This document shows, in pieces, positions 1-64,000 of a stretch of 64,000 bases of DNA (position 1 is its first letter; every line of letters starts with the position of its first letter). The position numbers were made by a program, and so were the translations under genes. The DNA is from Malacoraja senta (Eukaryota): the NCBI GenBank assembly GCA_038087875.1, contig CM075977.1:235414001-235478000 (forward strand), in the 5' to 3' direction. The notes below the pieces were generated by a model that was not told the DNA's origin, searched no databases, and saw only the letters and a program-made list of their open reading frames with translations.

Positions 1-279
1 AGCCGCTGTTCGCGGCCGCTGCTGCCGCTGTGCGGGGCCCGTCATTCACTCCGACTCGTCTGAAGCAGCTGCACCAAAGATCCTATAGCTAAAGGATCTC
101 TGAGCTGCACCGCCCGGCCCCGCACCTTGCTGTTGGCTGGCGGAGGAGGGAGGCGGTGGTGAGGAGTTCCCAACGGCCAAGGCAGCGGGGTGTTGTTGTC
201 CGAGGAACGCTGACCTTCCTTCCTCCCCACCACGCCTCTCCCTCTCTCTCTTGTACGCCCCCTCCACCCCCTTATCCTG

Positions 280-1065: not shown

Positions 1066-1079
1066 TTGTGCTGGAAATG

Positions 1080-1744: not shown

Positions 1745-2584
1745 TTAACTACATATAAATCCCTGTGAAATTATTTATCTTCAAAGTACCAAGGTCTTGT
1801 GCAGTTTTAGATTTGTCAGCATTGTTTTTACCAAGTTGAAACTACTGAAAGCTAAAAGCATAATTACTTTTGGGAAGATTTCATACTGGCTCAAGCAATT
1901 GTGACCAAGCCCTCTTTATATTCATGTTATTATATGAAAGGATTGATTCACAGCATCTTGCAGTGTATTTTGCAACTGCAAGCTAACAAGAACGATTTGC
2001 CTGTGATTACTTTTAAGGAGTTTTTAAGAAACAAATCCAAAAAATCTGTCATTTATGATGGAGGGGCCGTGTCCACTTTAGTATGATACGGTGGGCAATT
2101 ATCGGCGCTTTTTTATGAAAAGATTTTCGCATAAGATTTTCGCATATTTTAGTAGTTTATTACACAAGCATTCAAGACACGCTGACCTCTCTTGAAGAAG
2201 AGGAAATTAACAAACTAATCAAACGTACAGACTAAACTGAAGACCAGGGTCTGCATGGGTCATATTCACTTTTACTCAACAAAGTTAATGGCAAAAGTAG
2301 CATCAGTACTGTTACATGAAGAATGGTGCTTGAAGACAGGTGGACAGCTAAAGTCTTTCCGAGGTTTAAAGAAAACAAATTCGGAAATTAGACTTCTTGG
2401 TGGTAGGAATGACAGTTAATTGAAGTTGTAATATAACCTGAAAACAGTATTACGATCTTGTTATTTGGTAACAACTTTGTATCATCTGAAGTAACCAAGA
2501 CCAAGATAATGGCATATTCACATTTTCAAAAGGTTATCATTAAGCAGTCCTTTATCGCTTGTTTGAGATGCATGATCCCAGTCA

Positions 2585-2850
2585 AGACATAGATTTATAA
2601 TGAGAGGGGCATGATTTAATGGGAACCAGAGAGGCAACTTTTTCACAGAATGGTGGGTATATGGTGCAGCTACCAGAGTAGGTAGTTGAGGCAGGTACTA
2701 TTACACCATTTAAAATGTTCACAGGTACATGGATATGAAAGGTTTTGAGGGATATGGGCCAAACGTGGGCAGGTGGGATTAATGTAGATGGTGCATCTTG
2801 GGTCGGCATGGGCAAGTGGGCTGCAGGGCATGTTTCTGTGCAGTATAACT
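2585..2850 (+). mobile_element. CR1 (HER1-like) LINE 3' end
   Basis: Decayed GNFFTQRVV..WN.LP region plus 3' tail gggcaagtgggctgcagggcatgtttctgtgc. Confidence 0.75.
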
Positions 2851-5800
2851 CTTAAGTAGCCAGCAGGCAACATCTCTGGTAAGAAAGAATTGCATCAGAC
2901 TATACAGATCTGACACACTAAAGACAAGTTATCATTGGCTATTGAATAGGCACTATTGACCTGCCTGGCAGAGCTTAATTTAGCTTTGTTAGGATAAGAA
3001 AGACATTTAAGACTAGTTGCATTTCATTAATAATGGAGCAGGAAGCTAGGAGTCTCCCTCTGCAAAGTGATTGTGTAATCAGTTTGATTTCTTCAAAGTA
3101 TAAGTGGTCACATTACGAGCACTGCAGTCAATGAAGAAATATAATGAAACAATGGTTCACCTGGAAAATTGGGTCTTTTGGTAAAAGGGAAATAGGTTTT
3201 CTGGGGCACGTATCATTTCTGAGAAGTGAAGATGGAAAATTGAATTAAGGCATCAATCAGCAAGAGGATGGTCCCAGCAGAATGCTGAGTGAGAAAGGGG
3301 AAATGTCTCTTGGTATGATCTCATTAAAGTTGGTGAAAATTGTAGGATTAAACGTGCAAACTAGTAGGGTGGAAGTGAGAATGGGGAACTTGATCCTTTG
3401 GAGAGGGAACACAGTAGAAGAATAGGAGATCGTAGCAAAGTTTTATGATTAAGGAAAAAAATCTGAAGCATTGGTGCAGAAGGCTTTGTAATCAAATCAA
3501 AATATATTAACAAAGATGATTGGCCACATAATTGGTGATACATTTTCAAATTAGATTAATGAGTGATGTAGGGTTTTGATAGTAGGGTATCTAAATAGTT
3601 GAACCAAGGAACCTAAAGGATTATATACGTAATTCATCAAGTGCAGGTTAGTAATTACATTTTTTTTTTAATTGAAGCATGGGAATTAATTGATTTGGTG
3701 ATAGCATTGTAAAGCATGCCATGTTTGTTAAACCTTGATCGGGGTTGGCTGGGAGTAATGTGCTGAACTACTGAACTCTGTTAAAAAAAAAATTGGATGC
3801 CAGAAGAAAGTATAGATTTGTAAAAATGGTACAAGAACGGAGGTATTAAACTATTAAGTAAACAGAACAAACAGAAACTCCTCTCTGGGAAAGAAGCTTA
3901 TAGAATGACATGATGGCTATCTTTTAAAGTAATGATAAAGTCATAACTGAAACTTGGCACCGTTAATAGGAAGTTTCTTCATTTAATGAAAATCCCAGGG
4001 GATCCAAGAAAAAATTATTGAGCTCAAGGGTAGTTAGAATATAGAATAGGTCAATCCAAATAATTTTGATTCTTTTAAGGTGAAGCTCAGTAAATAATGG
4101 AGTGGTTGGACTGAATGGGATAGGTTTTATTGATGAGCGTCAGATGAAGGTAGAATTGGCATGAAGAAGCCTATTTGGAACATATACAGGCAAGGCCCAC
4201 CGCTGCCAAAATGGCTTCGTGCGCTAAGTAGTGATACGCATTTATACGATTTTTACTTCCCTTTCAGGAAGCTGTCCTTTTCTGTACTTGCGTGGAACTC
4301 TACTCTCTTGAATGGTACTATAACCAAGGTCATCTCTTTTCTCCTTTCTGCCATTGGGCAGATGATACAATCTTGAAAGCACAAGCCAATAGATTCAAGA
4401 ATGACTCCCTTGTGGTTATCACTCAAAAGGACCTTCCTTATGTGAATGATGTCTTCCCAATGAAGCTGTTCCTGGGTCTGGTGGTGCACGCTTTCAAGTT
4501 TATGCCCAGCAAGGAGAAGGAATGATCAGGGTGGGACAAGTTTATCATTATGTTGGCTGCTTTTCTGAAGTGGCGTGAAGTGTAGATGGAGTCAACAATG
4601 GGAAATCAGATCTGTGATGCACTGGGCTACATCTACAACTGCAATTTCTTGTAGTCTTGAGCAGAGCTGTTCCCAAACCAAGCTGTGTTGCAACCTGACA
4701 GTATGCTTTCTGTGGTGCAGAAGGATAGATGTAGAGCACATGTTTCCAGTTGTAGAAGAATTTAGAACTAGTCACGAGTCAAAAGGTTTTTCAGGCTAGC
4801 AATTCTCTGGAACTACTGCTCTTTCAATATTTTTAAGACAGAATTTGATAACCGCTGGATAGGTAAGGTGATTAAAAGGCTACAGTGAATATGAATATCA
4901 GGGATATAGTATTGAGATTATAATTAGATCAGCCATGATTTTATTTAATGGTGAAGGAAACTTGAGAGCTTACTCCTGCTATCATTTGTTTGTTCATCAT
5001 TGAAGGCCAATTACATGAGGCACCAAGGTTCCATAATCTAAATTGACTCTTTGGGTGTGAACAATCTGGAAAAATAATAGAATTTCAAATTATACATTTT
5101 ATGTTACCTTTTTTTAATGTATAAAAAGTTTTTTTTTAAAGACGCAATTTGTGCGATTTTAAATATTCAATAGACCTCTTGGGGATCAAACAAAAGTTGT
5201 ATTTTCCTTCCTTTTAATAGTACTTAAATTATCTGAGGTCTTTCTTATCAAAGAAAGAAAACTGAATTGTAATAACACTGCTTTTTTGATAGGGTTTTCT
5301 GCACAAGCATGGGTTTTCATTCACTTAATGAGTGTAGCTATCCGAACAAGACCTGTAGGTCCCAACTGTATTATGTCAGTTGAATGCTCCAACAAAGATT
5401 AAGGTTTGGGTCTGATTGGGCCATACTCGGCTGGCCTAGCATCCTGTCAAGGTCAGGACATCTAACACAACATCACTGCATGTTCGACATACTACATAGA
5501 CTTGCTGTAATGGTTTGCTCCGGCATGGAAAAAATACAAGGACTTTGTCTTGGGTCGAATCCAGAGCCACTGCAAGTTACGTTGGGCTCACCATTCACTG
5601 ATTTAGCACTTAAGCAGATCTTTAATGCGTTTAGGAATCGCCATTCACTTGGTCTTATGCAATCATCTCCCTTTTCACTTAATTTTGCTGCCGCATTTTA
5701 CTATGTGCTTGCATTTTGAACATTTTTGTAGAAATTGCTTCAGTGGAGCCCATGCATTTACAAGACTTGACTTTATTTCTCATAGCCTTTCCTCAGCAAT

Positions 5801-5907
5801 TCCTGCTAAATATTCTTCATTGGGAATGGGTGAATACAAGATTGTGGGGCACTAAATTTTGATAATCTAATTTTCAATTTCCCGTCTAATTTTAGCATTG
5901 AATTTGA

Positions 5908-44870
<38,963 letters not shown>

Positions 44871-45477
44871 AAATAACCTCTTTTATATTTAAAAATAGTC
44901 CCTTTGGCGTCATCTAAGACTGCAATTTCTGTTGTATGTCTAGTTTACATGGCACATTCAGTTTTTTTTCTCAAATGTACCTGGCTCGGTTTCTTTGGTA
45001 TTAAAATGGTGAAACCTCAAATCCTACCAGATTGATTTAAATATAGTAATGCTGTTAGCTGCCGATTTCTTTATTTTGTATCATCTTTTTAAGGTTTTTG
45101 TATCTGGTTTACAAGCACTTGAACAGTCACTCACCCACTTTGCAACTCTCCACTTCATGCCTTAATTCTATCTTTAAATTGGATATCTTCAAAATATAGC
45201 CACGTGCGCAACATTTTTAATTGAAAAATGGCCTGGATAATTGTAGTGTTTAAACATTGGTGTTTTATTTTACAAATGCTCCAATGGATTGTCGACTGGG
45301 ATCTGTGAACTTAATTATTTAAACTCTCACATACAACATGTATTTGTATAACCAAGGTTACTTTCCTGAACTATTAAATTACGATCTTTAGCTGATATTC
45401 CACGTATAATTGAATGTTTTTCCAGATGCACTGGAACATAATTCCTACCATGGTAAATTATAAAAATATTGAATTGT

Positions 45478-45483
45478 AATAAA
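45478..45483 (+). terminator. candidate proximal polyadenylation signal for HSPA4L
   Basis: AATAAA about 610 nt after the stop codon. Confidence 0.4.
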
Positions 45484-46453
45484 GATACACGAGCTGTTCT
45501 TAGCAATATTATGCAAAATAGGCAAAAATCACACAGCCTGTTAATGGGAGCATTTCAACTGGTGCTTTGCAGAAATGATAAAGGAAAGCCAGTAATTGCA
45601 GTCAAATATATTCTTTCAAATGATGTTAAATGTCTTGCACTGGGGGACAAAGGCTGCTTGTGCTTCAGACATCAGTTGAAGCTATGATATATTTTGGTAT
45701 ATTCTCCTTGATTTATGGCTAGCTGTTAATTTCACAGGACTGTAAACATTGACATCTGCTTTCCAGCTTAATAATTTTGGTAAATTGGTTGTGCTTTAAA
45801 GCTTGTGAGACTTGGTATAGCAGGAATGTAATTGTTCTGTTCATATATGCCCATGAATTCAAATTCTAGATATGGGGATTCCTGTGGTAACCATTATAAT
45901 TTGTTTTGTTAATCCTCTGTATGTAGCTGGCTGCATGAGTAATGCTCATGAACAATATCTGAGAAAGACATTAGAAGCACTCCATATGAATTTCTTTAGG
46001 TTCGTAACTCAGCTCACCAGGAATGAAAATTAAATTCCGATAAAGTATTAAACGTATAGAAAAAGTATCTTTTTTTAAGTATGCAGTTACTGGCATCTGG
46101 GTATGAATATCCAAGCCTAGCTCTGTTTATTGTTGTAAGATTAGATCAATATCTCTCCACCTCCAGAATGCAACAGGCTACACAAATATGGAAAACTTGC
46201 TCATCACTCACCAACATTGTTTTGCTCTGGATCTCAGTAAGCTCTATTGGATTGTGTTCTGATTAATTACTAATTGTATCCTAACATAACTGCAGGCATT
46301 GTACAAATGTAGGATAGATGCAAGATAGTTCATGCTTGCTCAACACTTGTGTTTGTCTGCCAACATTACATTAACATTTGTTTATAAGACATTTCCATAG
46401 CCACTTGTTAACAGCTGCCAACTGCTGTGCTTTATACATCTGAAATTTCTGTT

Positions 46454-46459
46454 TTTATT
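46454..46459 (-). terminator. candidate polyadenylation signal for the WDR95-like gene
   Basis: TTTATT on + (AATAAA on -) about 730 nt after its stop; another at 46126-46131. Confidence 0.35.
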
Positions 46460-46717
46460 TTTTAAGGTCTGGTGTTACATCTCTTGGACATCACTTAGAA
46501 CCAGGGGACAGGAATATTCTCAAGTGTTCATATATAGTTTATAGGTACCATAGGCAGATGTATGCTAATAGAAGCAGATTATACAGGTAGTGAGAAGTAT
46601 GAATGGGAAAGACCTGGTTGGCCTTGCTGTAACTGCAGGTACTCTTGTATTAAAAGCTGTGACAATCTGTACGGAAGAACATGCCAAGACCTACATCACA
46701 CAAATTTCAGGTTACAG

Positions 46718-46723
46718 AATAAA
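46718..46723 (+). terminator. candidate distal polyadenylation signal for HSPA4L
   Basis: AATAAA about 1.85 kb after the stop, in repeat-free AT-rich sequence. Confidence 0.35.
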
Positions 46724-47191
46724 TACAGAACCTTTTCAAAAACCAAAATGGAATAATCTCAAAGTGAATGGATTATGTTAAAGTCCTGCAATCTTCACAT
46801 ATCCAGTTATAAATGATGATAGGCTATTTCAGCCTGAATGTATACTGCACTATCACAGAACCTTGACTAGTAAATTTGATTCACACATCAGAAGTGACTG
46901 ACACCACAAGAGAAAACACCGGTTATTCTTCCTTTAGTATCCTGGATGCAACTTGGTGCTAGAACCACCCAATTAATTTCAACACAAATATACAGATGTC
47001 CAGATAGATCCTCAAAAAGCAAGACATCTAGTCTAGCCGTCCTCCACTATCACCATCAGTAGGAAATGCAATATTAGTGACTATATTTGAAGAGCATATC
47101 TAGAATCCTATTTATAGTGATTCAAAATAACAATATCAATCACAGGTTATCAATGTAATTTATAATTACTGCCATGTCCTACTTTGGGGTT

Positions 47192-47360
47192 TCAGGGCTC
47201 TGAAATTATGTTATTAAGAGGGAACAGTTCTGTTGCTGGATCAGGCTTCAAGATCTTCATTGAAATGTCAGCCAAATCATGACAATGTAGTGATTGATAT
47301 GCAGTCAGCCTTCCATAAACTTGTTGTTTTTCAATATGCTTCAGCTTCTGTTCCTGCAAT
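47192..47360 (-). CDS. WDR95-like terminal coding exon, 169 nt to TGA
   Basis: minus strand cttttag|ATTGCAG...CCCTGA; [55 protein letters not shown]. Confidence 0.8.
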
Positions 47361-50300
47361 CTAAAAGGAAAAGCATGTTTTTGTAAATAGTGGAGAGGTC
47401 ACAGTGATCATCTTTCTTGCATTTACATTTCGGAAGTGTCAGAGTTGTATAGCATAAAAATGGATGTACATACTGACCCTATTGCCTATCTACACTAATC
47501 CAATTTGCTTGCATTTGATCTGTCTCCTTCAAGGCCTTACGTTCCATTTGTACCTACTTAAATGTCTCTTGAATTATATTGTTTCTTACTCCCACCTCTG
47601 GCAGTGAATTCCAGATAGGAGCCACTGTGTAAAGCACCTTCCCATGAAATCCCCTTTAAAACTCCTACACCTCACTTTTAACCTAAACCCTCTTGATTTT
47701 TATACCCCTACCATGGCAAAAAAATATTTTGACTAACTACCTTATCTGTGCTTTGCAATATAACTTATCAAGTCACCCCTCTATCTCCATTGTTTCAGAG
47801 AAAACATTCCAGCACAACGACATCCTTACTGAAACTGCACACTACTGAGTGGCCTAACTAGTGTTTTGTAAAGTTGCCTCAGGCCAAATATGCCACGTGC
47901 GTGTTCATTACCTGATTTCCCTGCTGCCTGTCTTAAATAAAGGAACAACATAAGCAATCCTCCCATTTTCTGGCACTACACCTGTGCCTAATTAAAATGC
48001 AAAAATGGCCATCAGGGCCTCCAGCTACAGTGCATTTAGAAAGTATTCAGACCCCTTCACTTTTTCCACATTTTGTGACTACAGCCTTATTTTAATATGG
48101 ATTAAATTCTTTTTTTTAATATCATCAATCTACACCCAATACCCCAGAATGAAGAAGCGAAGACAGGTTTTGACATTTTTGCAAGTTAATTAAAAATAAA
48201 TAACTGAAATATCATATTTACATAAGTATTCAGAGCCTTTGCTATGACACTCAAAATTAAGCTTAGGTTCATCCCGTTTCCATTGATTATCCTTGAGATG
48301 TTTCTACAACTTGATTGGAGTCCACCAGTGGTATATTTAATTGATTGGACATGATTTGGAAAGGCACACACCTGTCTATATAAGGTCCCACAGTTGACAG
48401 TGCATGTAAGAGCAAAAAACAAACCATGAAGACTAAGGAATTATCCGTAGACCTCTGAGACAGGATTGTGTCGGGACGCAGATCTCAGGCATGAGATTTC
48501 TCCGCGGATTTTGAAATTAAAAAAAAAAGGAAAATATGTCTAAATCTCTATAAATGACTTTCCGCTAGACAATGGGACTGATGATCGAGGGCGCCGATTG
48601 GACGAGAGACGTCGGTCAGCAGGCAGTGGGGGAGGGTGGGACTGAGGATAGAGCACGGTGATTGGACGAGGGAGATGCATTTATGGTAGAGTCGCCAGAC
48701 GGAAGCCACTCCTCAGTAAAAGGCACATAAAGGACAGACCATGAGAAACAAGGCACCTAAAGATTTTCTGGTCTGATGAAACCAAGATTGAACTCTTTAA
48801 TGCCAAGTGTCACATCTGGAGGAAACCAGGCACCACTCATCACCTGGCCAATACCATACCTACGGTGAAGCATGGTGATGGCAGCATCATGCTTTGGGGA
48901 TGTTTTTCAGCGGCAGGAACTGGGGGACTAGTCAGAATTAAGGGAAAGATGAACGGATCAAAGTACAGAGATCCTTGATGAAAACATGCTCCAGAGCGTT
49001 CTGGACCTCAGACTGGGGTGGAGGTTCACCTTCCAACAGGACAACGACCCTAAGCACACAGCCAAGACAACGCAGGAGCGGCTTCATGACAAGTCTATGA
49101 ATGTCCTTGCGTGGCCCAGCCAGAGCCCGGACGTGAACCTGATCGAACATCTCTGGAGGGACCTGAAAATAGCTGTGCATCGACGCTCCCCATCCAATCT
49201 GACAGAGCTTGAGAGGATCTGCAGAGAAGAATGGGAGCAATTACCCAAATACAGGTGTGCCAAGCTTGTTGCATCATACCCGAGAAGACTTGAGGCTGTG
49301 ATCGCTGCCAAAGGGTCTGAATACTTATGTAAATGTGATATTTCAGTTATTTCTTTTTAATTACTTTGCAAAAATTTCTAAACACCTGTTTTCTCTTTTT
49401 TATTATGGGGTATTTTGTGCAGATTGATGATAAAAAAAAAAGAATTTAATCCATTTTAGAATAAGGCTGTAACGTAACAAAATGTGGAAAAAGTGAAGGT
49501 GTCTGAATACTTTCTGAATGCACTGTATCTCTTATCTTACCTGTCATCATAACCTGGGAAATTCTCATTAATCTTTAATGGGGTTTAATTAAACAATATG
49601 CCCCCAATGACATCTTAACTCTCCTCCTTGATACATGTTTCGGATAGATACAAAATGCTGGAGTAACACAGCGGGACAGGCAGCATCTCTGGGGAGAAGG
49701 AATGGGTGTCGTTTCGGGTCGAGACCCTTCTTCAGACCTGAAACGTCACCCATTCTTTCTCCCCAGAGATGCTGCCTGTCCCGCTGAGTTACTCCAGCAT
49801 TTTGTGTCTACCTTCGATTTAAACCAGCATCTGCAGTTCTTTCCTATACTTGTTCCAGATTATCCATATACTACTCACTTCCTCTAATAACAAAAGCAAA
49901 CTGCTGGAAGAACTCAATGTGTTAAGCAGCATCTATGACCAAAGAGATGGTCGACATTTTGGGTCAATAGACAATAGGTGCAGGAGTAGGCCATTCGGCC
50001 CCGAGCCAGCACCGGCATTCAATGTGATCATGGCTGATCATCCCCAATCAGTACCCCGTTCCTGCCTTCTCCCCATATCCCCTGACTCCACTATTTTTAA
50101 GAGCCCTATCTAGCTCTCTTGAAAGCATCCAGAGAACCTGCCTCCACCGCCCTCTGAGGCAGAGAATTCCACAGACTCACCACTCTCTGTGAGAAAAAGT
50201 GTTTCCTCATCTCCGTTCTAAATAGCTTACTCCTTATTCTTAAACTGTGGCCCCTGGTTCTGGACTCCCCCAACATCAGGGACATGTTTCCTGCCTCCAG

Positions 50301-53300
50301 CGTGTCCAAGCCCTTAACAATCATATGTTTCAATGAGATACCCTCTCATCCTTCTAAACTCCAGAGTGTACAAGCCCAGCTGCTCCATTCAAGACACTGG
50401 CTTCACAGATGCTGCTTTAAGAGGACGCACAATTTCTCTGGCTACCCTCGTGCTCCTGATGTACCACTGAAATGCCTTGGGATTATCCTTGATCTTAGAC
50501 AAGGATATCTCTTGGCCTGTTTTTGGAGCCCGATATCTTTGTTTAATTCTCTCCCACTCTATATTCCACAAATGACTCCCTCAATCCTAATTGTCCATGT
50601 CTGCTATATGTCTTTTATTTCCTGGTCAAACCTTTAATACACTCCAAAGGTATATTGGTATCCCCCATCTCTTTCTCCACTACATCGACGATTGCATTGG
50701 GGCTGCAACCGTGCAAAACATGTTGATTTAATTAACTTTACCACTAACTTCCACCCTGCCCTAAAGTTCATTTGGACTATCTCTGACAGCTCTCTCCTCT
50801 TTCTTGATCTCTCTGTCTCCATTATAGGGGACAAACTATTGACTGATGTATATTATAAACTTACAAACCCACTAACTCCCCCCCTGCCTATTGCAAAAAT
50901 GCTAATCTCTACTCTCAATTTCTCCTCTGCCGAAACTGCACCGAAGATGAAGCTTTCCATTCTAGAACATCCGATATGCCCTCTTACTTTAGTAAATGTA
51001 GTCCCCCCCCCCCCCCCGCTGTCAAAGATGGATGCCTCCCCCACCCCTTACACTGCTGTAATGCCTTCCATCCCCGTGCCAAATTAGCTTAATTATCCCT
51101 CAGTAGCATGATCAAACTTCTGCAATGAGATTGGCTCCCTTTTAGTTTAGGTACAACCCTTACTTCTCGTACAGATCCCACCTACCTAGGAAGTGATACA
51201 TATCATCCAAGTACCTGAGGTCTTCCTGTACTAGCTCTTTAGCCACAGGTTCACCTGTCCAATCCTCCCATTTCTACCCCCTCACTTGCATGTGGCACAA
51301 GGAGTAATCCTAAAATTATGACCCCAGAAGTCCTGCTTTTTTAATCTGCCTTTTTCATTAAGATCGTTCTGTTTATGTTGTCAGTGAGAGAATAATGTTT
51401 TGTATACAAATTACCTCATCTTGATAACAGAATCCACCTGTTCTATGTCTTTTGTAACTTCTTGATATTTCGTTTTGAGTAGGAACAATGCAATCTCCGA
51501 TTTACTTTTAACCTAGATCAGGTTGAAATCAAATTGAGAAAATGAAAGAAAAAAACAATTTCTGCACTACCCCAGAGACCATACTATAAAGAATTTCATT
51601 GACATTTCAATTCACCTATCACCACAACAGATCAAAAAGGCATGCGACCTTGCTGGCTCTCCACTCTGCACTACTTGGACAATAAGACTATGTAGGTCAG
51701 GCTGTCGTTCATCAACTACTCATCTGCTCAATCCTAGGTAATTTGATCCTCGACTTCCTCATAATCAGTATGAATTGGCAGTTAACCATCAATGCAGGCA
51801 TACCCCAGGCTGTGTTCTCAGTACCCTGCTCTCACCGTCTTCATGACTAGCCAGACACAGCTCCAATTCCATTCGCCAATTATACCACTGTTATTGGATG
51901 AAGACCGATTGCAATGATTCACTCCAGGAGGGAGATTGCCAGAATAAATATTACTTTCAATGTTAGCAAGACCAAGGAATTGATTGTAGACTATAGGAAG
52001 GCAAAACAGGGATCCATGAACCCATCTTAGATGAAATGGCAGTGAAGAGAGTCAGCAGCTTGAAGCACTATACATATCTCTGAAGATCTGTCATGGGCCT
52101 GGCACATCGATGCAATCACAGAAAAGCTAATTAGTGCCTCAAAGTAGCTAATTAGTGCCTCCTTCATTCCTGGGCATTCTAGTTGCCGAACTAAACCGTG
52201 ATGCAATCAGATAGTATGCTCTCTATTGTACACGGATAGAGAATTCACTGACATACATAATCTCAGTCTTCTAGGAAAGTTCTGAGGAGATTATGTATGT
52301 CAGTGAATACTCTAACAAAACTTCTATCCGTGTACTGTAGAGAGCATACTATCTGATTGCATCACGGCTTAGTTCGGCAACTAGAATGCCCAGAAATGAA
52401 GGAGACTACAGGGAGACTGGACAATGCCCAGTCCATCATGGGTAACAATCTCCCCACTATCAAAGGCATCTATAGGTGATGTGCCTCAAAAAGACAGCCA
52501 ATATAATCAGATCAACACCATCCTGGCCACACTCTCATTTCACTACTACTATCTGGAAAAAAGTACAGGAGCCTTGAAACCATGACCACCAGGTTCATAA
52601 ACAGCTTCTTCCCAGCAACTATCAGGCTCTTGAATACTACATACAACTAACCTCACCAACATTGACCTTCTATGGGCTGTGTCTTTGGTTGCACAGCAAA
52701 CTTCAATTATAGCATTATTATGGTTACCCAGTATTAAGTTTAAATTTGTGTGTTGCAATCATTATATATTTATGTGTGCGTTATTGTGTTTTCGAGCCTG
52801 GTAAGCTTAAGCAAGTAAGAATTTCAGTGTACTATTGCCAGTACATATGGCAATTAAACTCTTGATTCGACACTTAGTCCTTCATTCTGATGTACAAATT
52901 TGAAGAATGAATTCCCTTTTTGTCTCTTTCCCTTCACTGTTAGGTCAGGTAGATTGCATCAATTACAATATATCGTAGATACTATTTAATAACTTTCATT
53001 TAATAACTTTTTTACATGTTCCTTCCAATTATATATTTATTGGAATAGCATTTAAGGTGCTTTTGATTAATTATTGAAGAATGTGCATGAGATCCAAAAT
53101 GGTTCAGGGCAGGGTCAATACTGCAGGAGGGAGGGGAAGATATTTTGTTCCAGCAGAACAGAATCTCCCCTCCATCAAATCCTTTTGTCTTTTGAATCCA
53201 ATCTACCCACAGATTACTTCTATATCACGATTTAAAGGGTATGAATTTACAGACCAGTGCTATTTACTATATCAGAAAACATTCATACTTACTCTCTCAT

Positions 53301-56300
53301 TTGTTCCGCCATCACATTGTGAACTTAACTCCTTGGTGATTATTGATTGCCCCTGATTTTTTTCTGAAAGGCTTCTATGAATATTCCACAGTTTACCTTG
53401 GCCAAAGATACCTATAGAAAAATAAAATATTTTCCAAAATAGTACAATCCAAGTTACAACCTCACCATGCTGTGGACATTGCTCTCCTGTCATGAGGGGG
53501 TATAAAATCTACCTTTCTCCATGTGAATAGGTGGTGCACCATCGGTGGACGATATCTCGTCTGGAAACCATGTTTCAAAAAAATTCATTGCAGCTGGTTT
53601 TGTTTCTTTGGTAGCAATCCAGCGCTTGAATAAGCATTACAGATGGACCTCTTTTGACTTCAATTAGGTCATGCTTATTAAAAATGACTTTTAAATAAAA
53701 AAAGTAAAAACTCCATCCTGAACATCTCTCACCAAAAAGTAAATTTATGCCATCAGTTCATTGCTATTTATAATTTAAACAGTTCCCGTTTGCATAAGAG
53801 TCAAGAAGTAGGAACTGGGTAATTGACAACAACCCCAATAATTACACAAAAAAAAAACTTTTATACAGCAGAATGTGATTAAGGTCTGGAATATAACACC
53901 AAGCATCGGTGGAAGGAGAATCAGTTGTATTGTTCAAAAGGGATTAGATCGAATTTCTGAGAATCTATGGAGAGCGAGGAACCACCTGAATATCGACCTG
54001 AAATGCACCAAATAGCCTAATTCCATGTTATAATCATTGTTCCTTTATGATTTCTTGCACATGGCCAACTTGTTGCAAATATCAATTTAAATAGATTTAG
54101 TTAAAAATCTGTTGAGTCGAGATAAATGCAAAATCTATATAGCCTCACCAACTTAAACATAGTTTTAATATAAGTTGGATTGCCAAATTTCTCTTCAACC
54201 CACCACCATACATGTTTTTGTTGAAACTAAGACAACAATCACCTGACACGAGAATTACTTTGATAGTGATGTACCTTTCAGGACAGTTTGAGATTTCAAG
54301 ACATTCAAGACTGCCATCTCTAAAATGTGGGCAATTCTTATTGCAGTAAGTGAACTAAATCTTAATATTTTTAAGTTCCTGTGTTTCCTGCCACTTCAAG
54401 GAACAATTTCAGTTTATTTGCTACAAAGTTAAATTTTCACCAAACCTCGGTGACAATTATTTAGGATCAATTTGTCTTTGTCTTCGTATTTGTTTTTCTC
54501 TTTTCCCTCTTTCTCTTTTTTCTTCTTTTTTAGGGTCTATTTCTTAACTATTTTTTTTAATTTCTTTCTTATAGGGTCTTTGTTCTTTTTTGTTGTCACG
54601 TTTTTTACACTTTCACTTTTTTCCTTCACTTTCTCCTTTCTCTCAATCTCATCCTTTCCCTTTATTAGTGTAAAAAATGACGGAGTACATTAATTGTAAT
54701 AAGATATACGTGACGAGTACTAATGTAATTGGTTGTAATGTAATGTACTAATAAATAAAACAATTTAAAAACATTTAAAAAATTGTCTTTGCCTTGGAAT
54801 AACATCAACTGATATCTATAAGATTTATTTTAAAATTATTTAATATTCAAGGAGCATTAGCAGATTTAATTTGACATCCAGCCAGACACAAAGATATTAA
54901 GGCCATGACCAAAAAACAAGAGTGACAGATGAGTGGTGAGTGATGGGTGTGTTTAAATATTAACTTTCAGAGAGAGCTAAGAGCCTAGGTAGAAAAAGAT
55001 AGTCACGGGTAAAGTCCCAGAGGATTGGAACGTAGCCAATGTTGTTCCTTTGTTTAAGAAGGGAAGTAGAGAGAATCTTGGGAATTATAGGCCAGTGAGC
55101 CTCATATCAGTGTCAGGGAAGCTATTTGGAGAGGATTATTCGGATAGGAGTTATTCCCATTTGGAAGAGAATATGTTAATTAAGGACAGTCAGTATGGTT
55201 TTGTACGTGGCAGGTAGTGACTTACTAACAATCAAGTTTATTGAGGAGGTGACAAAGTTGATCAATGAGGTGGATGTTGTCTACATGGAGGCCAAAATAT
55301 GCCAAGTCAGAGAAAGGACAAAATTAAAGTTCTCACCGTTACAAATTCCCATCGACTATTGAAGTCAAGATTTTAGGAAATAAAATAGACCATTGCTTGC
55401 CCACTGTAACTTTTTCTGTTACTCAGAAGTATGGGTGGGGAATGCAAGTAATGGAGCGAATTATTGAACATTAAGTGAAAATCAAAAAATATTGCTGATG
55501 CCGGTAAACTAAACTAAAAACAGAAACTGCTACAAAATCCCAGGTCAGGCAGCACCTGCAAAACCCCTCATCAGAACATGAAACTTTTTTACTTCCCACG
55601 GATGATCTATTGAGCGTTTTCTGTGTTTTTAGATTCCCAGTGCCTACATTGTCACTTACTTGTTGAATTCACTCGCCACCTCTCTTTCAGGAATGTCTAA
55701 CCTGAATAAGTTATTTTCTGCTTTTCAGTGGGATTTCCCTACATCTCTCTTGCCTTGCAGTGAAGGGTTTTAAAACTCAAATGTCAGCTCTGTTTCATTT
55801 CCCACAGATGCAGCCAGATCTGTTGGGTATTTCCAGCAATTTCTGTTTTTAATTGAGCATTTATTTTTTAATTTTTTTTTTAAATTATTTATTTCGAACA
55901 GAATAAAAGAATAAAAAGCAAGTGTGAAACAGCATACAAAAAAAAGAAGAAAAAAAATATATTTATAAAGTGTCATAAACAATATTTATAAATAAATGAA
56001 ATCATATGTGTCCGAAAAGGAGCAGGAAGAAGCCAAAGCTTATTAATTCCCACCCCTAATTCAACTGCTTATACAAATTTAGCAGCTATAAACACCTATT
56101 TCCATAAGTACACCAACTTATTTACATTTATACACTAATCAAATATTTACAAAGCCATACAAAAAAAGAGAGAAAAAAATAAAAAATAAAAAACCCTCAT
56201 ATACTATACAGTATCTCTTAGTCATATATACAACCCATCACCCTATAATCACCTTTCCCAATACAATCAGTATAACAAATATCCCACTCAAAATCACCTA

Positions 56301-59194
56301 TCCTCATCCCAATATCCTTTAAAAAATTTGTTTTTGTACATCTTTTTTAACTGAATTATGTTTGTGCTAAGTTTTATCTCCTGTTCCAAACCATTCCACA
56401 AATTCACCCCACAGATTGCTATGTATTGAATTTGATAAATGTAAACTGCTGGCTCTCTACTCTCATTTCAATATGGAACAAGGTGTACAACATCTGTACG
56501 CAAAGATAACCAAAACGTAATGTTCAGAGCAAGACAGGCTTAGTTCTTCTGATGCGTACCTACAAACTCTCCTTTAACATTCCAGAGCTTCACAGTACAA
56601 TCCACAGAAGATGTAAACAGTAACTGATCTTCTTCCACCAGCCCAATACTGTTATCAAAATGAGAAGGGAAAGTTGAAAGTGACAATTTAAAATATACCT
56701 TCACATGATTGTTGAATAGATTATGCAAAGAGTTATATGACCATAGATAGACACAAAAAGCTGCAGTAACTCAGCGGAACAGGCAGCATCTCTGGAGAGA
56801 AGGAATGGCTGACGTTTCATGTTGAGACCCATTCCAAACCAGTATCTTCAGTTCCTTCCTACACAAGTATATGACCGTCATTTTCTGGTGCAATTGCAGG
56901 ATAACTTTCCTACGTGACTGGTCCACATTGATAGAATGTTTATTAAGAGCCTGCAATCGAATAAAATCCATAAAAAGCTATAAACAATTGCATATTGGTC
57001 AAGGTTCCTGAACCAAGTCAAAGTATATTTACAAAAATAACCCCAGGAATGATTGGGTTAACATATGATGAGCATTTGACAGCACTGGGCCTGCACTCGC
57101 TGGAGTTTAGGAGGATGAGGGGGGACCTCAGTGAAACTTACCGAAGTGAATGGCAGGGATAGAGTGGACATGGAGAGGATGTTTCCACTCATGGGAGAGT
57201 CTAGGACCAGATGCCATAGCCTCAGAATAAAAGGACGTACCTTTAGAAAGGAGATGAGGAGGAATTTCTTTAGTCAGAGGCTGGTGAATCTGTGGAATTC
57301 TTTGCCACAGATGCCTGTGGAGGTCGTCAATGGATATTTTTAAGATTGTCAGATTTTTGAATAGTAAGGGTGTCAGGGGTTATGGGGAGAAGGTAGGAGA
57401 ATGCGGTTGAGAGGGAAAGATAGATCAACCATGATTGAATGGTGGAGTAGACGATGAGCCGAATGGCCTAATTCTGCTCCTTTAACTTACAAATTTATAT
57501 TAGGATTTTAAACTAAAAGCAAATCTTGCAAATATGGGAAATCTAAAATAACAGAAAATGCTAGTAATACTCAACAGAACCGACAGCAAATGTGGGCTGA
57601 GAAATATAATAATAGTTTCATGTTGAAAAACTTTATCAGTTAACCTGAAATATTAATTCAGTTTCTCTCTCCATAGATATTGCCTGATCTGTTGAGCATT
57701 TCAAGCATTTTCAGTTTATTATTTCTTGCATTTTTAATGTTCAATGTTTCAGTACATCTTTTTGAGTCATAAAACTTTAATATTGTTAATCTAGAACAGG
57801 AGGAGTCACTGAAGGTGTACATAAAGTGTAAAGGACATGTAATACAGAGCAACTTCTCTCAGCTTCTATACTTTTGCAAAATCTTCTTTGCATCTTCATG
57901 GAAATAAATGGTAGACTTTGATGGTTTCAGAAAACACTACCACAAAATGATAAATATATAGTCATGAACGTTCATATTATGATTTTGGTGCTATATTCAG
58001 ATAATTGGAAAAACTGAGGTGAGCATATTTATATTTTGAGATTGTGTACTTTTCGGAACATTCATTATCACATTTATTTCTGGAACATCCAGCTTACCTT
58101 GTGACACTGCATTCGTGTGCTTTCCAACGCGCCGATGCTTTACAAGAAAATTAATTTAACCAAAAGATTAGTTACTGCACGTTCAGTTTCAGTACTTTTG
58201 TTGAATATGGATTTAGTACAGTATTTAATTAAACTCCATTCTTACTTTCTGGAGGATGTGTTTCTGGTCCACGAAGTGCAAAATGAAGAACATGAAAGAT
58301 GTAGATATATCCACTGTGATCAGCAACACAAAGCAGCGAGCTGTCCTCACTAATTGTCATGCTAGTTACTGTAGTTCTATATGCGGACTGATAGGAATAT
58401 ACAATGTTAAAATATTTCTTAACAAACCACATTTGAATTTTTTGTTACCCTAAAGTTCGCTTTTTCTGAATCGCATTGATGTGATTCCATTGGATATTAA
58501 GAAACATTTCATCCCAAGTATAAAGAGAAAGTGAAGGAAGCACTCAGCAGGACAAGTGGCATTTATGGTAAATAAAACAGAGTTAATGTCTCAGGAATTA
58601 CCCTAAATTCTTAGGCATTTTTTCTAGTTATCTCAAATACATTGGCTGAAGAGTTCCTGGCTCTTGTACTCCCTACATTATCAAAGCAAACTAAGGACAT
58701 TTAGAGCACCTTTATCACTAACTGACTGTGCTTGACAAAAAATTCATAGGGCATTTCAATTTGTACAGCTTGTCGAACAAATTCATGCAAATTACCCAAT
58801 GATCATCTAACAATATCAAAAAGTGTAAGATTTGCTGCAAGTGTTGTTAAAGATGCACTCATATATTAGTCAGTGATGTCCACTTCCTAGCACATTTCCC
58901 TGCTTTAACTAGAATACAGAAAGTTTAAATATCCATCTGTATCATATCTTCCGTTTCCACAGATCTTTTTCTGATGTTAATACAGTACATTTGGTGAATC
59001 ATTGTAGTGGCTCTCCCTGTGTAGCAGACCTCTACACAAGTCTGCATGACCCATCTCCAAAGACCACCTCCCCAAATGGAAAATCAGGACAGAAGGCAGC
59101 AACATAATTAGATAAAATAAATACTTAAAACTTACACACGGGAAGTAAGCCAACAGCTTTCCACCATGGAATATATTCCAAAAATGAATGCAAC
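47192..59194 (-). CDS. WD40-repeat protein, WDR95-like (WDR49/WDR64/WDR95 group), 5'-partial: 7 exons, 716 nt of CDS in window
   Basis: Seven phase-compatible GT-AG exons give [118 protein letters not shown]...[24 protein letters not shown]...EP*. It has a WD-like signature (AH...[11 protein letters not shown]). The family call is from recalled similarity to mammalian WDR95. Confidence 0.8.
48028..49525 (+). mobile_element. Tc1/mariner transposon with both TIRs, internally deleted
   Basis: TA|CAGTGCATTTAGAAAGTATTCAGAC ... GTCTGAATACTTTCTGAATGCACTG|TA. Motifs [19 protein letters not shown] and [11 protein letters not shown]. Same family as the 29102 copy. Confidence 0.95.
49643..49848. mobile_element. 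palindromic Penelope-terminal-repeat-derived element
   Basis: Inverted arms; minus strand carries CTGAAGAAGGGTCTCGACCCGAAAC. Confidence 0.7.
49965..50620 (-). mobile_element. CR1 fragments (3' end joined to an upstream ORF2 piece)
   Basis: [24 protein letters not shown] and [15 protein letters not shown]. Confidence 0.8.
50630..51000 (+). mobile_element. Penelope-like element (PLE) reverse transcriptase fragment
   Basis: YIDDCIG (frameshifted), then [43 protein letters not shown]: a PLE-type RT C-terminus. Confidence 0.8.
51415..51512 (-). CDS. WDR95-like exon, 98 nt
   Basis: minus strand tctag|GTTAAA...GATGAG|gtaatt; [32 protein letters not shown](R). Its phases bridge the flanking exons exactly. 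Confidence 0.7.
51590..52870 (+). mobile_element. decayed Rex1/L2-like LINE RT-3' fragment with an internal inverted duplication
   Basis: [30 protein letters not shown] and [17 protein letters not shown] remnants. Confidence 0.75.
53293..53411 (-). CDS. WDR95-like exon, 119 nt
   Basis: minus strand tatag|GTATCT...GAGAGA|gtaagt; (G)[39 protein letters not shown]. Confidence 0.82.
55860..56430 (-). mobile_element. L2/Crack-like LINE 3' end
   Basis: Minus strand [28 protein letters not shown], followed by a T-rich 3' UTR ending GTTCGAAATAAATAA. Confidence 0.65.
56560..56648 (-). CDS. WDR95-like exon, 89 nt
   Basis: minus strand aacag|TATTGG...TTGTAG|gtacgc; [29 protein letters not shown](G). 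Confidence 0.88.
57040..57492 (+). mobile_element. CR1 3' end
   Basis: [47 protein letters not shown]. Confidence 0.88.
58098..58137 (-). CDS. WDR95-like micro-exon, 40 nt
   Basis: minus strand taaag|CATCGG...CACAAG|gtaagc; (T)[12 protein letters not shown](S). Confidence 0.85.
58246..58387 (-). CDS. WDR95-like exon, 142 nt
   Basis: minus strand atcag|TCCGCA...CAGAAA|gtaaga; [47 protein letters not shown]. Confidence 0.88.
59136..59194 (-). CDS. WDR95-like exon, 59 nt
   Basis: minus strand tctag|GTTGC...CCGTGT|gtaagt; (G)[19 protein letters not shown]. Confidence 0.85.
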
Positions 59195-59559
59195 CTAGAA
59201 TACAAATAAATCATCATGATCCGAAATGGCTACATTGGCCAATGATCAAACTATGTTAAATTAAAGTTTCTAAAAAATATAAAAACACAATTTGCACCAA
59301 AGCACTATGTTGCAGGTCATATTTAGCAACACATGCTTGTATGTTGTATTATGTTAAAGCTATTAAACCTATGCCCTCTACTCCTTGATCCCCCTTAACT
59401 GGGAAAAGGAATCTGTGCATTCATCCTATCTATCCCCCTCATCTATGAGATTACTGCTCAGTCTCCTGCGCTCCGAAGAATAAACCTTTAGTCTGCTCAA
59501 CCTTACCGTATAGCTCAGGAACTTAAGTCCTGGCAATACCCTCAATCATTGCTCATTTG

Positions 59560-60695
59560 TTTCTCGTTGAACGTAGCATCACAAGTACATGCTGTACAAG
59601 TAGAGAGATTGGTAAAGAAGGTGTATGGTATGTTTGACTTCATCAAGTGGGGCATTTTGAATCACAATCAGGAAGTTGTGTTACAGCTTTTTAAAACTTT
59701 GGTTAGGCCGCATTGGTGTATTGAGTATAGTTCTGGTTGCTCCATTACAGGAAGGATGTGGAGGCTTTGGAGAGGGTGCAGAAGATTAATGCTTTCTGGA
59801 TTAAAGGCTATTAGCCATAAGGAGAGTGTATAGGAAGGAACTGCAGATGATGGTTTAAACCAAAGATAGACACAAAATGTAAGTAAGTAAGTAAGTTTAT
59901 TGGCCAAGTATTCACATACAAGGAATTTGCCTTGGTGCTCCGCCCACAAGTAACAACATGACATACAGTGACAGTTACGAATGACTCAGGAAACACTAAA
60001 CATTAATAATAATAAGACATTAATGATAAAACACCATTGATCAAGCATGTGAACCAACAAAATACCAGATCAAAGTGAGGCTACATATTTTTGGCTGTTG
60101 AGTAGAGCAACTACTCGTGGATAAAAACTGTTTTTATGTCTGGCTGTGGCAGCTTTGACAATCCGGAGTCGCCTTCCAGAGGGAATGCTGGAGTAACTCA
60201 GCGGGACAAGCAGCATCTCTGGAGAGAAGGAATGGGTGATGTTTCCAGTCTGAAGGGTCTCGACATAAACATCACCCATTCCTTCTCTCCAGAGATGCTG
60301 CTTGTCCCGCTGAGTTACTCCAGCCTTTTATGTCTTCGGACAAACTTGGATTGTCTTGTCTGGAGGCTGATGGGAGACCTATTAGTTTATAAATTTCTGA
60401 GGCAAAGATAGAGTAGACAGTCAGAATCTTTTATCTAGGATGGAAATGTCAAATACTTGAGGACATGGCTTTATGGTGAGAATGGGTCATTTAAAGGAGA
60501 TGTGCAGGCCAAGTTTTTATGCAGAGAGTGGAAAGTGCCTGGAACGCACTGCCAGGGGTGGTGATGGAAGCAGAAACGATAGTGACATTTAAGAGGCTTT
60601 TTTGAAACATGAATATGCAGGGAGTGAAGGTATATGGGTCATGTGCAGGAAGAAGGGATCAGTTTATTCTGGCATCATGTTCAGCACAGACATCG
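59560..60695 (+). mobile_element. CR1 3' part containing a palindromic element (59828-60335) that itself contains a minus-strand Rex1-like 3' end (59878-60185)
   Basis: VVLQLFKTLVRPH segment; the palindrome arm GACACAAAATG is split from CTGGAGTAACTCAG by an (ACTT)n-tailed insert. Confidence 0.8.
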
Positions 60696-61194
60696 GGGGA
60701 GATAGTAATATTAGGATTTAGATATATAGTTCTTTAAAAGTAGTTTCTTAATAATGCCTCAAAAAGTGTTACTAGATTTTATAAATATGAACATATTCAA
60801 ACAGAAGCAGAGGCAGTATTACATTTAAACGAGTCAGCTATTTTATTGTTACAAGAATATGATCCCTTGGTTACAACAGGAAACAAGAAACCAAAAGCCC
60901 TTTCATTAGAATAGATCGAGAGGTGTAAATAAAAGTATTGCAGTCAAAGGTTTTGAGAAGAAAAATATTTCAAAGAATACAAAGTGTCTAGGAATATTTT
61001 TAAAGCAGATAGTTGATCAAACACCAAGGTAAAATAGAATGCAAAATAACTCTTGAAGGAACATTTTAATATTTATTTTTAATAATATTTTTAAAGATGA
61101 TAAGAATGCGACTAGGCCATACCTCGCTAAAGAGGTGTTTGCCCATTCATCCACTCTCCATGTTATGATGATAAAGTTTACTCATTTAAAAAAT

Positions 61195-62165
61195 TCATAA
61201 GTTTATGTCACAGGAGCAGAATTAGGCCATTTGGCCCAGTGAGTACTCTGCCATTCAATCATGGCTGATCTATCTTTCCCTCTCAAACCCATTCCCCTTC
61301 TCCCCATAACCCTTCACATCCTTACTAATCACAAATCTGTCAATTTCTGCCTGAAAAACTACCCAATGACTTGACCACCGCCATCTGTTGCAATGAATTC
61401 CACAGATCCATTGATAAAAATGTAAAATTGTGCAAGTTGGTGATATGCAGAGTTCTGCCCTGCCGACTACAAAATTCTGAAGGTTCAGAAGATCCACCAT
61501 GCTCTGACTAAAGAAATTTCTCCTTAGCTTCTTTCTAAAGGCGTCCTTTTATTCTGAGGCTGTGGCCTCTGGTCGTATACACTCACACTCGTGGAAACAT
61601 CCTCTCCAGGCCTTTCACTATTCTGTAAGTTTCAATGGGGTCCCTCCTCTTTCCCCTAAACTCCAGTGAGTACAGGCTCAGTGCCGTCAAACGCTCATCA
61701 TATGTTAACGCAATGATTCCTGGGATAATTCTCGTAAACCTCCTCTGGACCCTCACTAACGCCAGCATATCCTTCCTCACATATAGGGTCTAAAACTACT
61801 CACAATACTCCAAATGCACTCTGACCAGTGCCTTATAAAGCCTCAGTATTACATTCCTGTATTTGTATTCTAGTCTGGAAATAAATGCTAGCATTATATT
61901 AGCCTTCCTTGCTACTGATTCAATTTGCAAATTAACCTTTTTGGAATCCTGTACCAGCACTCCCAAGTCCCTTTGTAGCTCCAATTTCTGAATCCTGTCC
62001 TCATTTAGAAAATAGTCTATGCCTTTATCCCTACTATATAAATGCATGACTGCACAATTTGTTTACCGTATTTCATCTGCCACTTCTTTGCCCACCCTCC
62101 TCATCTGCCATTTCTTTGCTCACTCTCCCAACCTGTCCATCTGCAGAGTCCATGCTTTCTCTATA
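61195..62165 (-). mobile_element. CR1 3' part
   Basis: ELQRDLGVLVQDS, LYKALVRVHLEYC, VQRRFTRIIPG. Confidence 0.88.
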
Positions 62166-62184
62166 TTACCTGCCCCTCCATCCA

Positions 62185-64000
62185 TTCAAGATGGCGGTGC
62201 GACCGGTGCTTGCAGCAGCCTCTCTCAGTGAAAATGCAGTGCTTTTGTGTATTATTGGAGCGAGTGGTGTGTCTGCAGAATGTGTGGAAGGAGAGCGTAT
62301 GTATGAGCGACAGTTTCTGTTGGACACTCACAACAAAGTTTCTTGTTACGACAAACGCTTACTGAGCGTATTGAGCGAGCTTGGATTTCTGCGCCGTATA
62401 GGCCCAAGGAAAGCCGCAGCTGCACCTGGAGCAACACTGGTGAGGAATCATCGTAAGCGGTGTAGCAGGATGCGGAAGCGGGGGAAGTGCGGAGGAGTCT
62501 ACGCTAGGCTAATCGCTAATCCATACAAACCAGCAGTGCCTACACTCATGTTGGCAAATGTCCGATCCCTCGACAACAAGATGGATTACATCAGAGTGTG
62601 GAGAGCTTCTCAACGTAGCGTGAGGAACTGCTGTGTCTACGTTCTCACGGAGACCTGGCTGAACCAGAACATCACTGACGCTGCGATCCAGCTGGAGGGG
62701 CTAATGCTACACAGAGCTGACAGAGTAGCTTCGCTAACCGGTAAGTCAAGGGGAGGCGGCCTGGCTGTGTACGTCAACAGATCATGGTGCCGGGATGCCG
62801 TGGTGGTTTCCACTTACTGCTCACCCCACGTAGAGCTAATGACTGTGAAATGCTGACCCTTCTACTTACCGAGGGAGCTGACGGCAGTCTTCATAACGGC
62901 CGTTTATGTACCATCGAGCGCGGACGTGAAGGATGCTATGACAGAGCTCTACAACAACATCAGTGAGCAGCAGAGGGAACATCCCGATGCCTTTTTCATG
63001 GCAGCTGGGGATTTCAACCAGGCAAGTCTCACATCTGTTCTGCCTAAATTCTACCAGCATGTGAATATTGCAACCAGGGGAAAGAACAGACTAGACCTGG
63101 TGTACACAAACATCAAAGTTTCATATAGAGCAGCCCCCCTCCCCCATATCGGCAACTCTGACCACCTGGCGGGTATGCTCACACCTGCATACAGACCTAG
63201 GGTGAAACAGGACAGGCCAATGGTCAGAGAAGTCAGAATATGGCCACAGGGAGCTACCGCAGCACTGCAAGATTGTTTTGAAACCACACAGTGGGCCATT
63301 TTCAGAGAGGCAGCAACATGTGACAGCGGCATTGACCTTCAGGAATATGCAGAGTCTGTCATTGGCTATATTAATAAATGCATTGATGATGTGACTGTGA
63401 TAAAAACTGTCAAGAGGCATGCCAATCAGAAACCTTGACTAACTGGGGAAGTTTGTTCTTTGCTGAGAGTCCAAAATGCTGCATTCAAATCTGGGGACAA
63501 CGCAGCATACAAATTGGCACGGAGTAATCTGTCCCGGGGATCAGGGAAGCGAAGAGGCGGTATGCACAAAAACTAAACAGCCACTCCACAGAGGACGCAG
63601 TCTCTACAACACTCAACCTCGCACTATCACATCTCGACCGGAAGAACACCTATGCCAGGATCCTCTTCGTAGACTTCAGCTCAGCTTTTAATACAATCGT
63701 CCCATAGCAGCTGGTGGAGAAGCTGAAGCTGTTGAAGGTGGACACTGGCACTTGTAACTGGGTCCTTAATTTTTTGATTAAGCGGCAGCAGACAGTCAGG
63801 GTGGGCAGCCAGACATCAAGAACCATCTCAGTGAGCACTGGCTCACCCCAAGGCTGTGTCCTAAGCCCCCTGCTGTTCAGTCTGCTTACTCATGACTGTA
63901 CTGCCAGACTCAGCAATAATTATATCAATAAGTTCGCTGATGACACAACAGTGGTGGGTCTCATCAGCGACAACAATGAGTCGGCATACAGGATGGAGGT
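62185..64000 (+). mobile_element. Rex1/Babar (L2-group) LINE with intact-looking 5' end; APE plus RT ORF disrupted by stops, a frameshift and an internal deletion; runs off the window
   Basis: Begins CAAGATGGCGGTG. APE motifs LANVRSLDNKMD, LTETWL, AGDFN, LDLVY, GNSDH; RT motifs [36 protein letters not shown]. Premature stops at 62854, 63436 and about 63705. Confidence 0.9.

Follow-up and report, generated by a model that had tools for sequence, protein, structure and literature searches.

A 64,000-nucleotide stretch of Malacoraja senta DNA (contig CM075977.1, positions 235,414,001 to 235,478,000), hereafter referred to as the window, carries on its minus strand the 3' part of a gene encoding a WD40-repeat protein, which ends tail-to-tail with a plus-strand gene encoding a chaperone of the Hsp110 subfamily. 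The WD40 gene is likely to be a sister of WDR95 that is linked to HSPA4L and PLK4. An earlier note, made from the sequence alone, had described seven canonical, phase-compatible minus-strand exons with about 237 uninterrupted codons and a stop codon 2.3 kb from that of HSPA4L, and had read the gene as a possible retained ohnologue. Rebuilding the exons from the DNA gave 716 nucleotides (nt) and bore out every detail of the described structure, and the distance between the two stop codons was measured at 2,321 bp.

The seven WD40 exons

The seven exons span positions 59194..47192. All acceptors were AG following a pyrimidine-rich tract and all donors were GT (gtaag four times, gtacg and gtaat), the 12 internal splice sites being canonical throughout. 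Exon phases were compatible, and the 716 nt resolved into 2 nt of a split codon, 237 codons and a TGA, with no stop or frameshift. The exons are as follows:

59136..59194, minus strand: first visible exon, 59 nt, opening with 2 nt of a split codon (G); acceptor ttctag, donor gtaagt
58246..58387, minus strand: exon 2, 142 nt, encoding SAYRTT...GPETHPPE; acceptor cctatcag, donor gtaaga
58098..58137, minus strand: micro-exon 3, 40 nt, phase compatible; acceptor tgtaaag, donor gtaagc
56560..56648, minus strand: exon 4, 89 nt; acceptor ataacag, donor gtacgc
53293..53411, minus strand: exon 5, 119 nt, end of the last WD blade and a variable linker, ...GGTNER; acceptor ttctatag, donor gtaagt
51415..51512, minus strand: exon 6, 98 nt, helical C-terminal region; acceptor gatctag, donor gtaatt
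47192..47360, minus strand: terminal coding exon 7, 169 nt including the TGA at 47192-47194; acceptor ccttttag

The visible part of the polypeptide comprises the last WD repeats (with WNIF... and GIFGQ..W motifs) and a helical tail. It represents the 3' third of the gene, 237 of roughly 800-890 codons, and about 570 codons lie beyond the window; a low-stringency tblastn search for upstream exons in 59195-64000 gave chance matches only.

Homologues of the WD40 peptide

A HMMER scan with the 47 residues of exon 2 against 1.8 billion representative proteins returned two informative matches, a fragment from a related organism with 98% identity (P0001) and, with 64% identity, XP_059499963.1 (P0002), an 807-amino-acid (aa) protein of the zebra shark Stegostoma that is automatically labelled 'WDR49-like'. 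All seven exons were colinear with the proteins of four sharks (Stegostoma, Pristiophorus, Scyliorhinus torazame and Hemiscyllium), with identities of 66-72% over the 237 residues (Pristiophorus 72%, S. torazame 68%, Stegostoma 67%). The first visible exon was 79% identical to residues 437-460 of the Pristiophorus protein (P0057) and 569-592 of P0002, micro-exon 3 aligned with TLACWRAHEYSVTS of P0057, exon 4 reached 84-87% identity to P0057 and P0055, and exon 5 was matched by tblastn in P0057, P0055 and P0002. Identity to the shark homologues was 55-67% in exon 6, and exon 7 was 87% identical to residues 628-673 of P0057 and contained a 22-residue signature of the clade designated A below. 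Seven ordered exon blocks colinear with the C-termini of shark proteins are far beyond what chance would give.

Using the zebra-shark protein as query, a large family was recovered whose members bear interchangeable automatic names, including WDR49-like, WDR64(-like), CFAP337(-like) and 'WD repeat-containing protein on Y chromosome'. The matches of exon 2, the seven colinear tblastn blocks and the placement in phylogenetic trees all put the window peptide in this FAP337/WDY/WDR95 family. As a candidate for the closest relative WDR64 was rejected: the solved bovine protein (9fqr_No) reached 149 bits with clade A, in a match of about 110 residues, and 117 bits with clade B, whereas the remaining family members listed in the same search scored about 690-1900 bits. 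On account of these low scores WDR64 is a far more ancient, remote relative of both clades.

Phylogenetic analysis

Two maximum-likelihood trees were calculated under LG+G4, the first from 56 rows by a quick search, the second from 40 rows by a careful one, with branch support from the ultrafast bootstrap and the Shimodaira-Hasegawa-like approximate likelihood ratio test (SH-aLRT). WDR49 and EFCAB8 were absent from these trees. Both trees gave one picture. The window peptide belonged to a gnathostome clade, designated A, with a support of 100 (SH-aLRT) in the first tree and 100/100 in the second, and the sister of this clade was a second one, designated B, supported by 100/100. Together the vertebrate sequences formed one group (100/99) relative to 'WDY-like' proteins of amphioxus and of hemichordate, echinoderm, nemertean and cnidarian origin, and the placement of the lamprey was weak in the second tree (81/50).

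Clade A included the window peptide, the four sharks, a skate, sturgeon, bowfin, coelacanth, lungfish, caecilians, salamanders, frogs, turtles and lizards. Clade B included a chimaera, sharks, rays, ray-finned fishes including teleosts, coelacanth, lungfish, amphibians, reptiles, a bird, a monotreme, marsupials and placentals. The presence of both clades in cartilaginous fishes was seen through sister species: S. canicula (B) and S. torazame (A), Chiloscyllium (B) and Hemiscyllium (A), Leucoraja (B) and Amblyraja (A). Among the family members returned by the zebra-shark query there was no mammal, bird or teleost in clade A; since reptile and amphibian members scored 745-830 bits, a full-length mammalian member would be expected among them if it existed.

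Clade-A proteins were about 840-920 aa in length with no EF-hand (PF13499) listed. Those of clade B were about 1080 aa, and an EF-hand was listed in non-mammalian members. The mammalian proteins of clade B (for example, P0116, P0106 and P0160) had no EF-hand Pfam domain listed, unlike those of fishes, sharks, amphibians and reptiles; either the domain has been lost or degraded in mammals, or the N-termini were mis-modelled.

Clustering at 90% identity groups the clade-B proteins of hamster and deer mouse with entries called 'Wdr95' or 'WD40 repeat domain 95' (Ensembl/UniProt, Phodopus annotation), and the two rows of the second tree that represent such clusters both fell in clade B. Because the WDR95-named entries belong to clade-B rodent proteins, clade B is WDR95 and clade A its sister paralogue. 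A zebrafish homologue of FAP337, its own sequence outside these trees, was also listed as WDR95 in 2019 (PMC6761771). Assignment of the window gene to the WDR95 orthogroup proper was rejected, the peptide falling in sister clade A with both clades at 100/100.

Synteny of the two paralogues

In the bowfin (Amia) the order was PLK4 (minus strand), the clade-A gene (plus) and a gene for an 843-aa Hsp110 (minus), the latter two lying tail-to-tail at 3.8 kb. The gecko Heteronotia had the same order and orientations, with an 840-aa Hsp110 and a gap of 7.5 kb, the clade-A gene again standing between PLK4 and the chaperone gene. On chromosome 1 of Xenopus tropicalis PLK4 (minus) and the clade-A gene (plus; XP_017951623.2) were followed by INTU (minus). 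At this locus (CM004443.2: 64301749-64354074) INTU, not an Hsp110 gene, lay 2.2 kb 3' of the clade-A gene; neither HSPA4L nor ANT4 separated INTU from the WD gene in this assembly, a sign that hspa4l may have been lost or relocated in this frog. In human, anole and chicken the published gene order is INTU-ANT4-HSPA4L-PLK4-MFSD8 (PMC3155547). Combining this order with the bowfin, gecko and Xenopus loci, the clade-A gene fills the interval between HSPA4L and PLK4, on the opposite strand. The window itself shows the HSPA4L side only, PLK4 not being within it, and the link to the INTU-ANT4-HSPA4L-PLK4 block was obtained indirectly through these orthologous loci.

For clade B, the gene of the characiform Colossoma (plus) was tail-to-tail with a gene for an 840-aa Hsp110 (minus), 1.6 kb apart. 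In human, a single-nucleotide polymorphism (SNP) in a table of a genome-wide association study is located as intergenic between WDR95P and HSPH1 at 13q12.3 (PMC7890067).

The neighbouring Hsp110 gene and the convergent spacer

The chaperone gene and the spacer between the two genes have the following features:

5908..44870, plus strand: Hsp110 gene body, at least 13 exon-bearing blocks of open reading frame from the nucleotide-binding domain to the stop
44661..44870, plus strand: last coding exon of the Hsp110 gene (HSPA4L by synteny), ending ...NTEMEVD followed by TGA, stop 44868-44870
44871..47191, no strand: convergent spacer, 2,321 bp between both stop codons, with AATAAA-type hexamers on both strands and the predicted 3' untranslated regions of both genes within it

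The exon at 10141-10386 matched the nucleotide-binding domain of human HSPH1 (Hsp105; 6gfa, 1.4e-39) and yeast Sse1, far above canonical Hsp70s. With these as the best solved matches, and with C-terminal exons of the Hsp110 type, the gene belongs to the Hsp110 subfamily; human HSPH1 is the only vertebrate Hsp110 with a solved structure, and matches to structures cannot tell the Hsp110 paralogues apart. Motif scans of positions 1-8000 for its 5' exons gave nothing convincing.

The last coding exon could be aligned with the last exon of the PLK4-linked Hsp110 genes of bowfin (L004) and gecko (L005). Identities per exon were 84/62/72/57% to the PLK4-linked Hsp110 of Amia and 51%, in a single long shared exon, to that of the gecko, as against only 60/51/45/35% to the clade-B-linked Hsp110 of Colossoma. 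Since bowfin and Colossoma are equally distant from a shark, the gap between their identities marks paralogy of the Hsp110 genes. Given also that the clade-A gene is flanked by PLK4 and Hsp110 elsewhere and that the human order is INTU-ANT4-HSPA4L-PLK4, the window chaperone appears to be the orthologue of HSPA4L, as judged by synteny and per-exon identities.

Repeats and composition of the window

The window consists of repeat-rich vertebrate DNA. The last WD intron (48986-49360, plus) contained remnants of Tc1/mariner-type transposases, as did an Hsp110 intron (29529-29954 and 31176-31454, both plus). Long open fragments of long interspersed nuclear elements (LINEs), including C-terminal parts of reverse transcriptase, were found at 30050-30982, 31458-32255, 11843-12592 and 62059-63438 on the plus strand and at 61586-62062 on the minus strand. 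An endonuclease-like 5' part of a LINE (265 aa and 170 aa) lay just upstream of the first visible WD exon, and shorter copies of the LINE tail motif were scattered through the introns of both genes. C/T-rich stretches of low complexity at 93-1100, 8957-9541 and 27749-28233 (plus) contained long proline/serine-rich open reading frames in several frames (PPPPSILH-type), and the first 2 kb of the window had a GC content of 0.48 and a GC skew of -0.30. These stretches are probably arrays of simple repeats or tails of short interspersed elements, not coding sequence.

Origin of the gene and alternative explanations

Taken together, the data make it likely that the window gene is a genuine coding gene, the HSPA4L/PLK4-linked sister of WDR95, derived from an Hsp110-WD pair that was copied as a block. 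The copying of an ancestral convergent pair would predate the divergence of cartilaginous and bony vertebrates and most probably belong to the vertebrate genome duplications; the resulting gene would stand tail-to-tail with HSPA4L and head-to-head with PLK4. The HSPA4L-linked WD copy would later have been lost in mammals and, apparently, in birds and teleosts as well, and humans would in addition have pseudogenised WDR95. The two sister WD genes date to after the amphioxus split and before the separation of cartilaginous and bony vertebrates, each convergent with a different Hsp110 paralogue. This places the duplication between the split from invertebrate chordates and the gnathostome radiation, with both copies in cartilaginous and bony vertebrates, as ohnologues would have it.

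Several observations weigh against this reading. The pairing of clade B with Hsp110 was seen directly once, in Colossoma, where the identity of the partner as hsph1 is inferred, and is otherwise a literature statement for human; the clade-B genes of Carcharodon, Callorhinchus, Monodelphis and Fukomys had no called neighbour within 10 kb. As to the window copy itself, its branch is somewhat longer than those of the other sharks, its extreme C-terminus (the last 10 residues or so) departs from the family ending AAEL.D.FD, and with only the last 30% of the gene in view a disabling lesion could lie upstream. The stretch from exon 2 through the intron to exon 3 was found in none of five RNA-labelled public runs, its words being present only in runs of unknown kind from three organisms. 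These five runs contained 6-7% of the sampled words of 56000-59300, which coincidentally equals the exonic fraction; such words probably come from repeats, the LINE fragments at about 56.7-57.4 kb, and not from the gene. Observations of this kind, namely the missing RNA support, the 5' 70% of the gene out of view, the slightly longer terminal branch, the atypical last residues and changes in 4 of 39 conserved columns, would fit a unitary pseudogene, the well-preserved tail of a gene recently inactivated or untranscribed in this species and functional in other sharks. We consider this improbable in view of the 12 canonical internal splice sites and the absence of any lesion in 716 nt. Of 39 columns with a conservation of 85% or more over the two clades, the window peptide keeps 35, one fewer than Pristiophorus (36), the range in other clade-A proteins being 36-39; the contig of the related organism is 98% identical in amino acids over exon 2, and the lineage has retained the gene since before the split of sharks and bony fishes.

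A regional or tandem duplication of the Hsp110-WD block in the vertebrate stem, which would make the two genes paralogues and not ohnologues, also seems unlikely, if a little less so. The trees bracket the split of A and B no more closely than between the divergence of amphioxus and the gnathostome radiation, the lamprey being weakly placed. One duplicated neighbour shared by the WD copies was seen, the Hsp110 gene, in the same orientation in both. Against a local event stand the location of the two Hsp110-WD pairs in different human regions (4q28.1 and 13q12.3) and the duplication of both members of the pair together with their orientation kept. Moreover, 4q28, 5q31 and 13q12 probably form one paralogon of the two rounds (2R) of vertebrate genome duplication, together with the ParaHox and PDGFR-FLT groups, and the third Hsp110 gene, HSPA4, lies at 5q31. 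Hardly credible, finally, is the view that the gene is a plain orthologue of WDR49, WDR64 or CFAP337, with nothing extra in this lineage. It draws on the names of the nearest relatives at NCBI ('WDR49-like', 'WDR64(-like)' and 'CFAP337-like'); the same borrowed names, however, sit on clade-B proteins that other sources call WDR95, which marks them as best-hit labels, and the distance to WDR64 has been given above. Clade A, in turn, is linked to PLK4 and HSPA4L, whereas human WDR49, WDR64 and EFCAB8 are at 3q26, 1q43 and 20q11.

Retention of an HSPA4L-linked sister of WDR95 thus being the preferred explanation, one may ask about the arrangement itself, which was found in shark, bowfin, gecko and characiform and of which the human WDR95P remnant beside HSPH1 still bears witness. 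The persistence of two convergent Hsp110-WD40 pairs for more than 400 million years may conceivably reflect functional coupling and not inertia, a speculation to which we attach little weight. A shared 3' regulatory or termination region would in that case drive joint expression in the germ line or in ciliated cells. HSPA4L and HSPH1 are both testis-enriched. If coupling were real, mammals could have dispensed with the WD partner only once that coupling had been rewired.

The expectations of the earlier note can be judged against these results. Its reading of the gene as a retained ohnologue is supported by the two fully supported sister clades and their pairing with different Hsp110 genes, and its statements that mammalian WDR95, a pseudogene in human, lies beside HSPH1 and that human HSPA4L is followed by PLK4 agree with the published SNP location (PMC7890067) and gene order (PMC3155547). 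Three of the outcomes that it named as fatal did not occur, as far as the data reach: the peptide does not group with WDR64, it is not the single-copy WDR95 orthologue, as cartilaginous fishes have both clades, and the chaperone is, by synteny and exon identities, the PLK4-linked Hsp110. That this lineage kept a second WDR95 paralogue is right in so far as the gene was kept and none was found in mammals, but understated, most gnathostomes other than mammals, birds and teleosts having kept clade A. The gene is unnamed in the sense that no name of its own was found, although gene models exist under borrowed ones.

Significance and predicted function

Two distinct vertebrate genes, one of them WDR95, account for the proteins that in sharks, lungfish, amphibians and reptiles bear the labels WDR49-like, WDR64(-like), CFAP337-like or WDY-like. 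For the second of these genes, the HSPA4L/PLK4-linked sister of WDR95, no separate name, mammalian counterpart or publication came to light, and neither the sister relationship to WDR95 nor the HSPA4L/PLK4 address or the duplicated pairing with Hsp110 was met in a limited literature search. The novelty is modest, as the family is known and orthologous models are already public under misleading names; the finding is useful for annotation and nomenclature and is no surprise in kind. It exemplifies the joint duplication of two convergent genes and the subsequent disappearance of one of them from particular lineages.

The clade-A protein would belong to the FAP337/WDY/WDR95 family of axonemal proteins with a double WD40 propeller. 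In Chlamydomonas FAP337 depends on FAP57. The Tetrahymena protein CFAP337, built of a helical bundle and a pair of propellers, is seated on CCDC96/113 and contacts the dynein d stem; in mammalian sperm, WDR64 is also found on CCDC96/113. Wdr95 of the mouse is enriched in testis, the knockout being fertile. By analogy with CFAP337 and WDR64, the clade-A protein would use its propellers to dock near inner dynein arm d on the coiled-coil network of CCDC96/113 and CFAP57, and a docking role in motile cilia or sperm is the most likely one. Because it has no EF-hand, clade A may lack calcium input. It can be regarded as a further candidate component of the CCDC96/113-CFAP57 hub, for study only in non-mammals such as Xenopus, geckos and bowfin.

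Comparison with known proteins

CFAP337/FAP337 of Chlamydomonas and Tetrahymena, Drosophila WDY and mammalian WDR49 and WDR64 combine an EF-hand, a double WD40 propeller and a helical C-terminus and are axonemal. Their axonemal position, on CCDC96/113 and CFAP57 near inner dynein arm d, is known only for CFAP337 and WDR64; clades A and B together have the invertebrate 'WDY-like' proteins as their direct outgroup. Stegostoma XP_059499963.1, the Pristiophorus 'CFAP337-like isoform X2' and S. torazame scyTo_0010777 are orthologues of the window gene, in the same clade and colinear exon by exon, the window copy differing in a linker in exon 5 that is shorter by 9 residues and in its divergent last 10 residues. 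These automatic shark models carry names taken from non-orthologous human genes. With WDR95 (mouse Wdr95; human WDR95P) the gene shares the family, the last WD blades, linker and helical tail ending KPD/KPN and the same convergent pairing with an Hsp110 gene. The window peptide is, in contrast, only 26-33% identical to clade-B WDR95 proteins over 237 aa, and clade A differs from WDR95 in being about 200 aa shorter, in having no EF-hand Pfam domain and no mammalian member found, and in its neighbours, which are HSPA4L and PLK4 instead of HSPH1.

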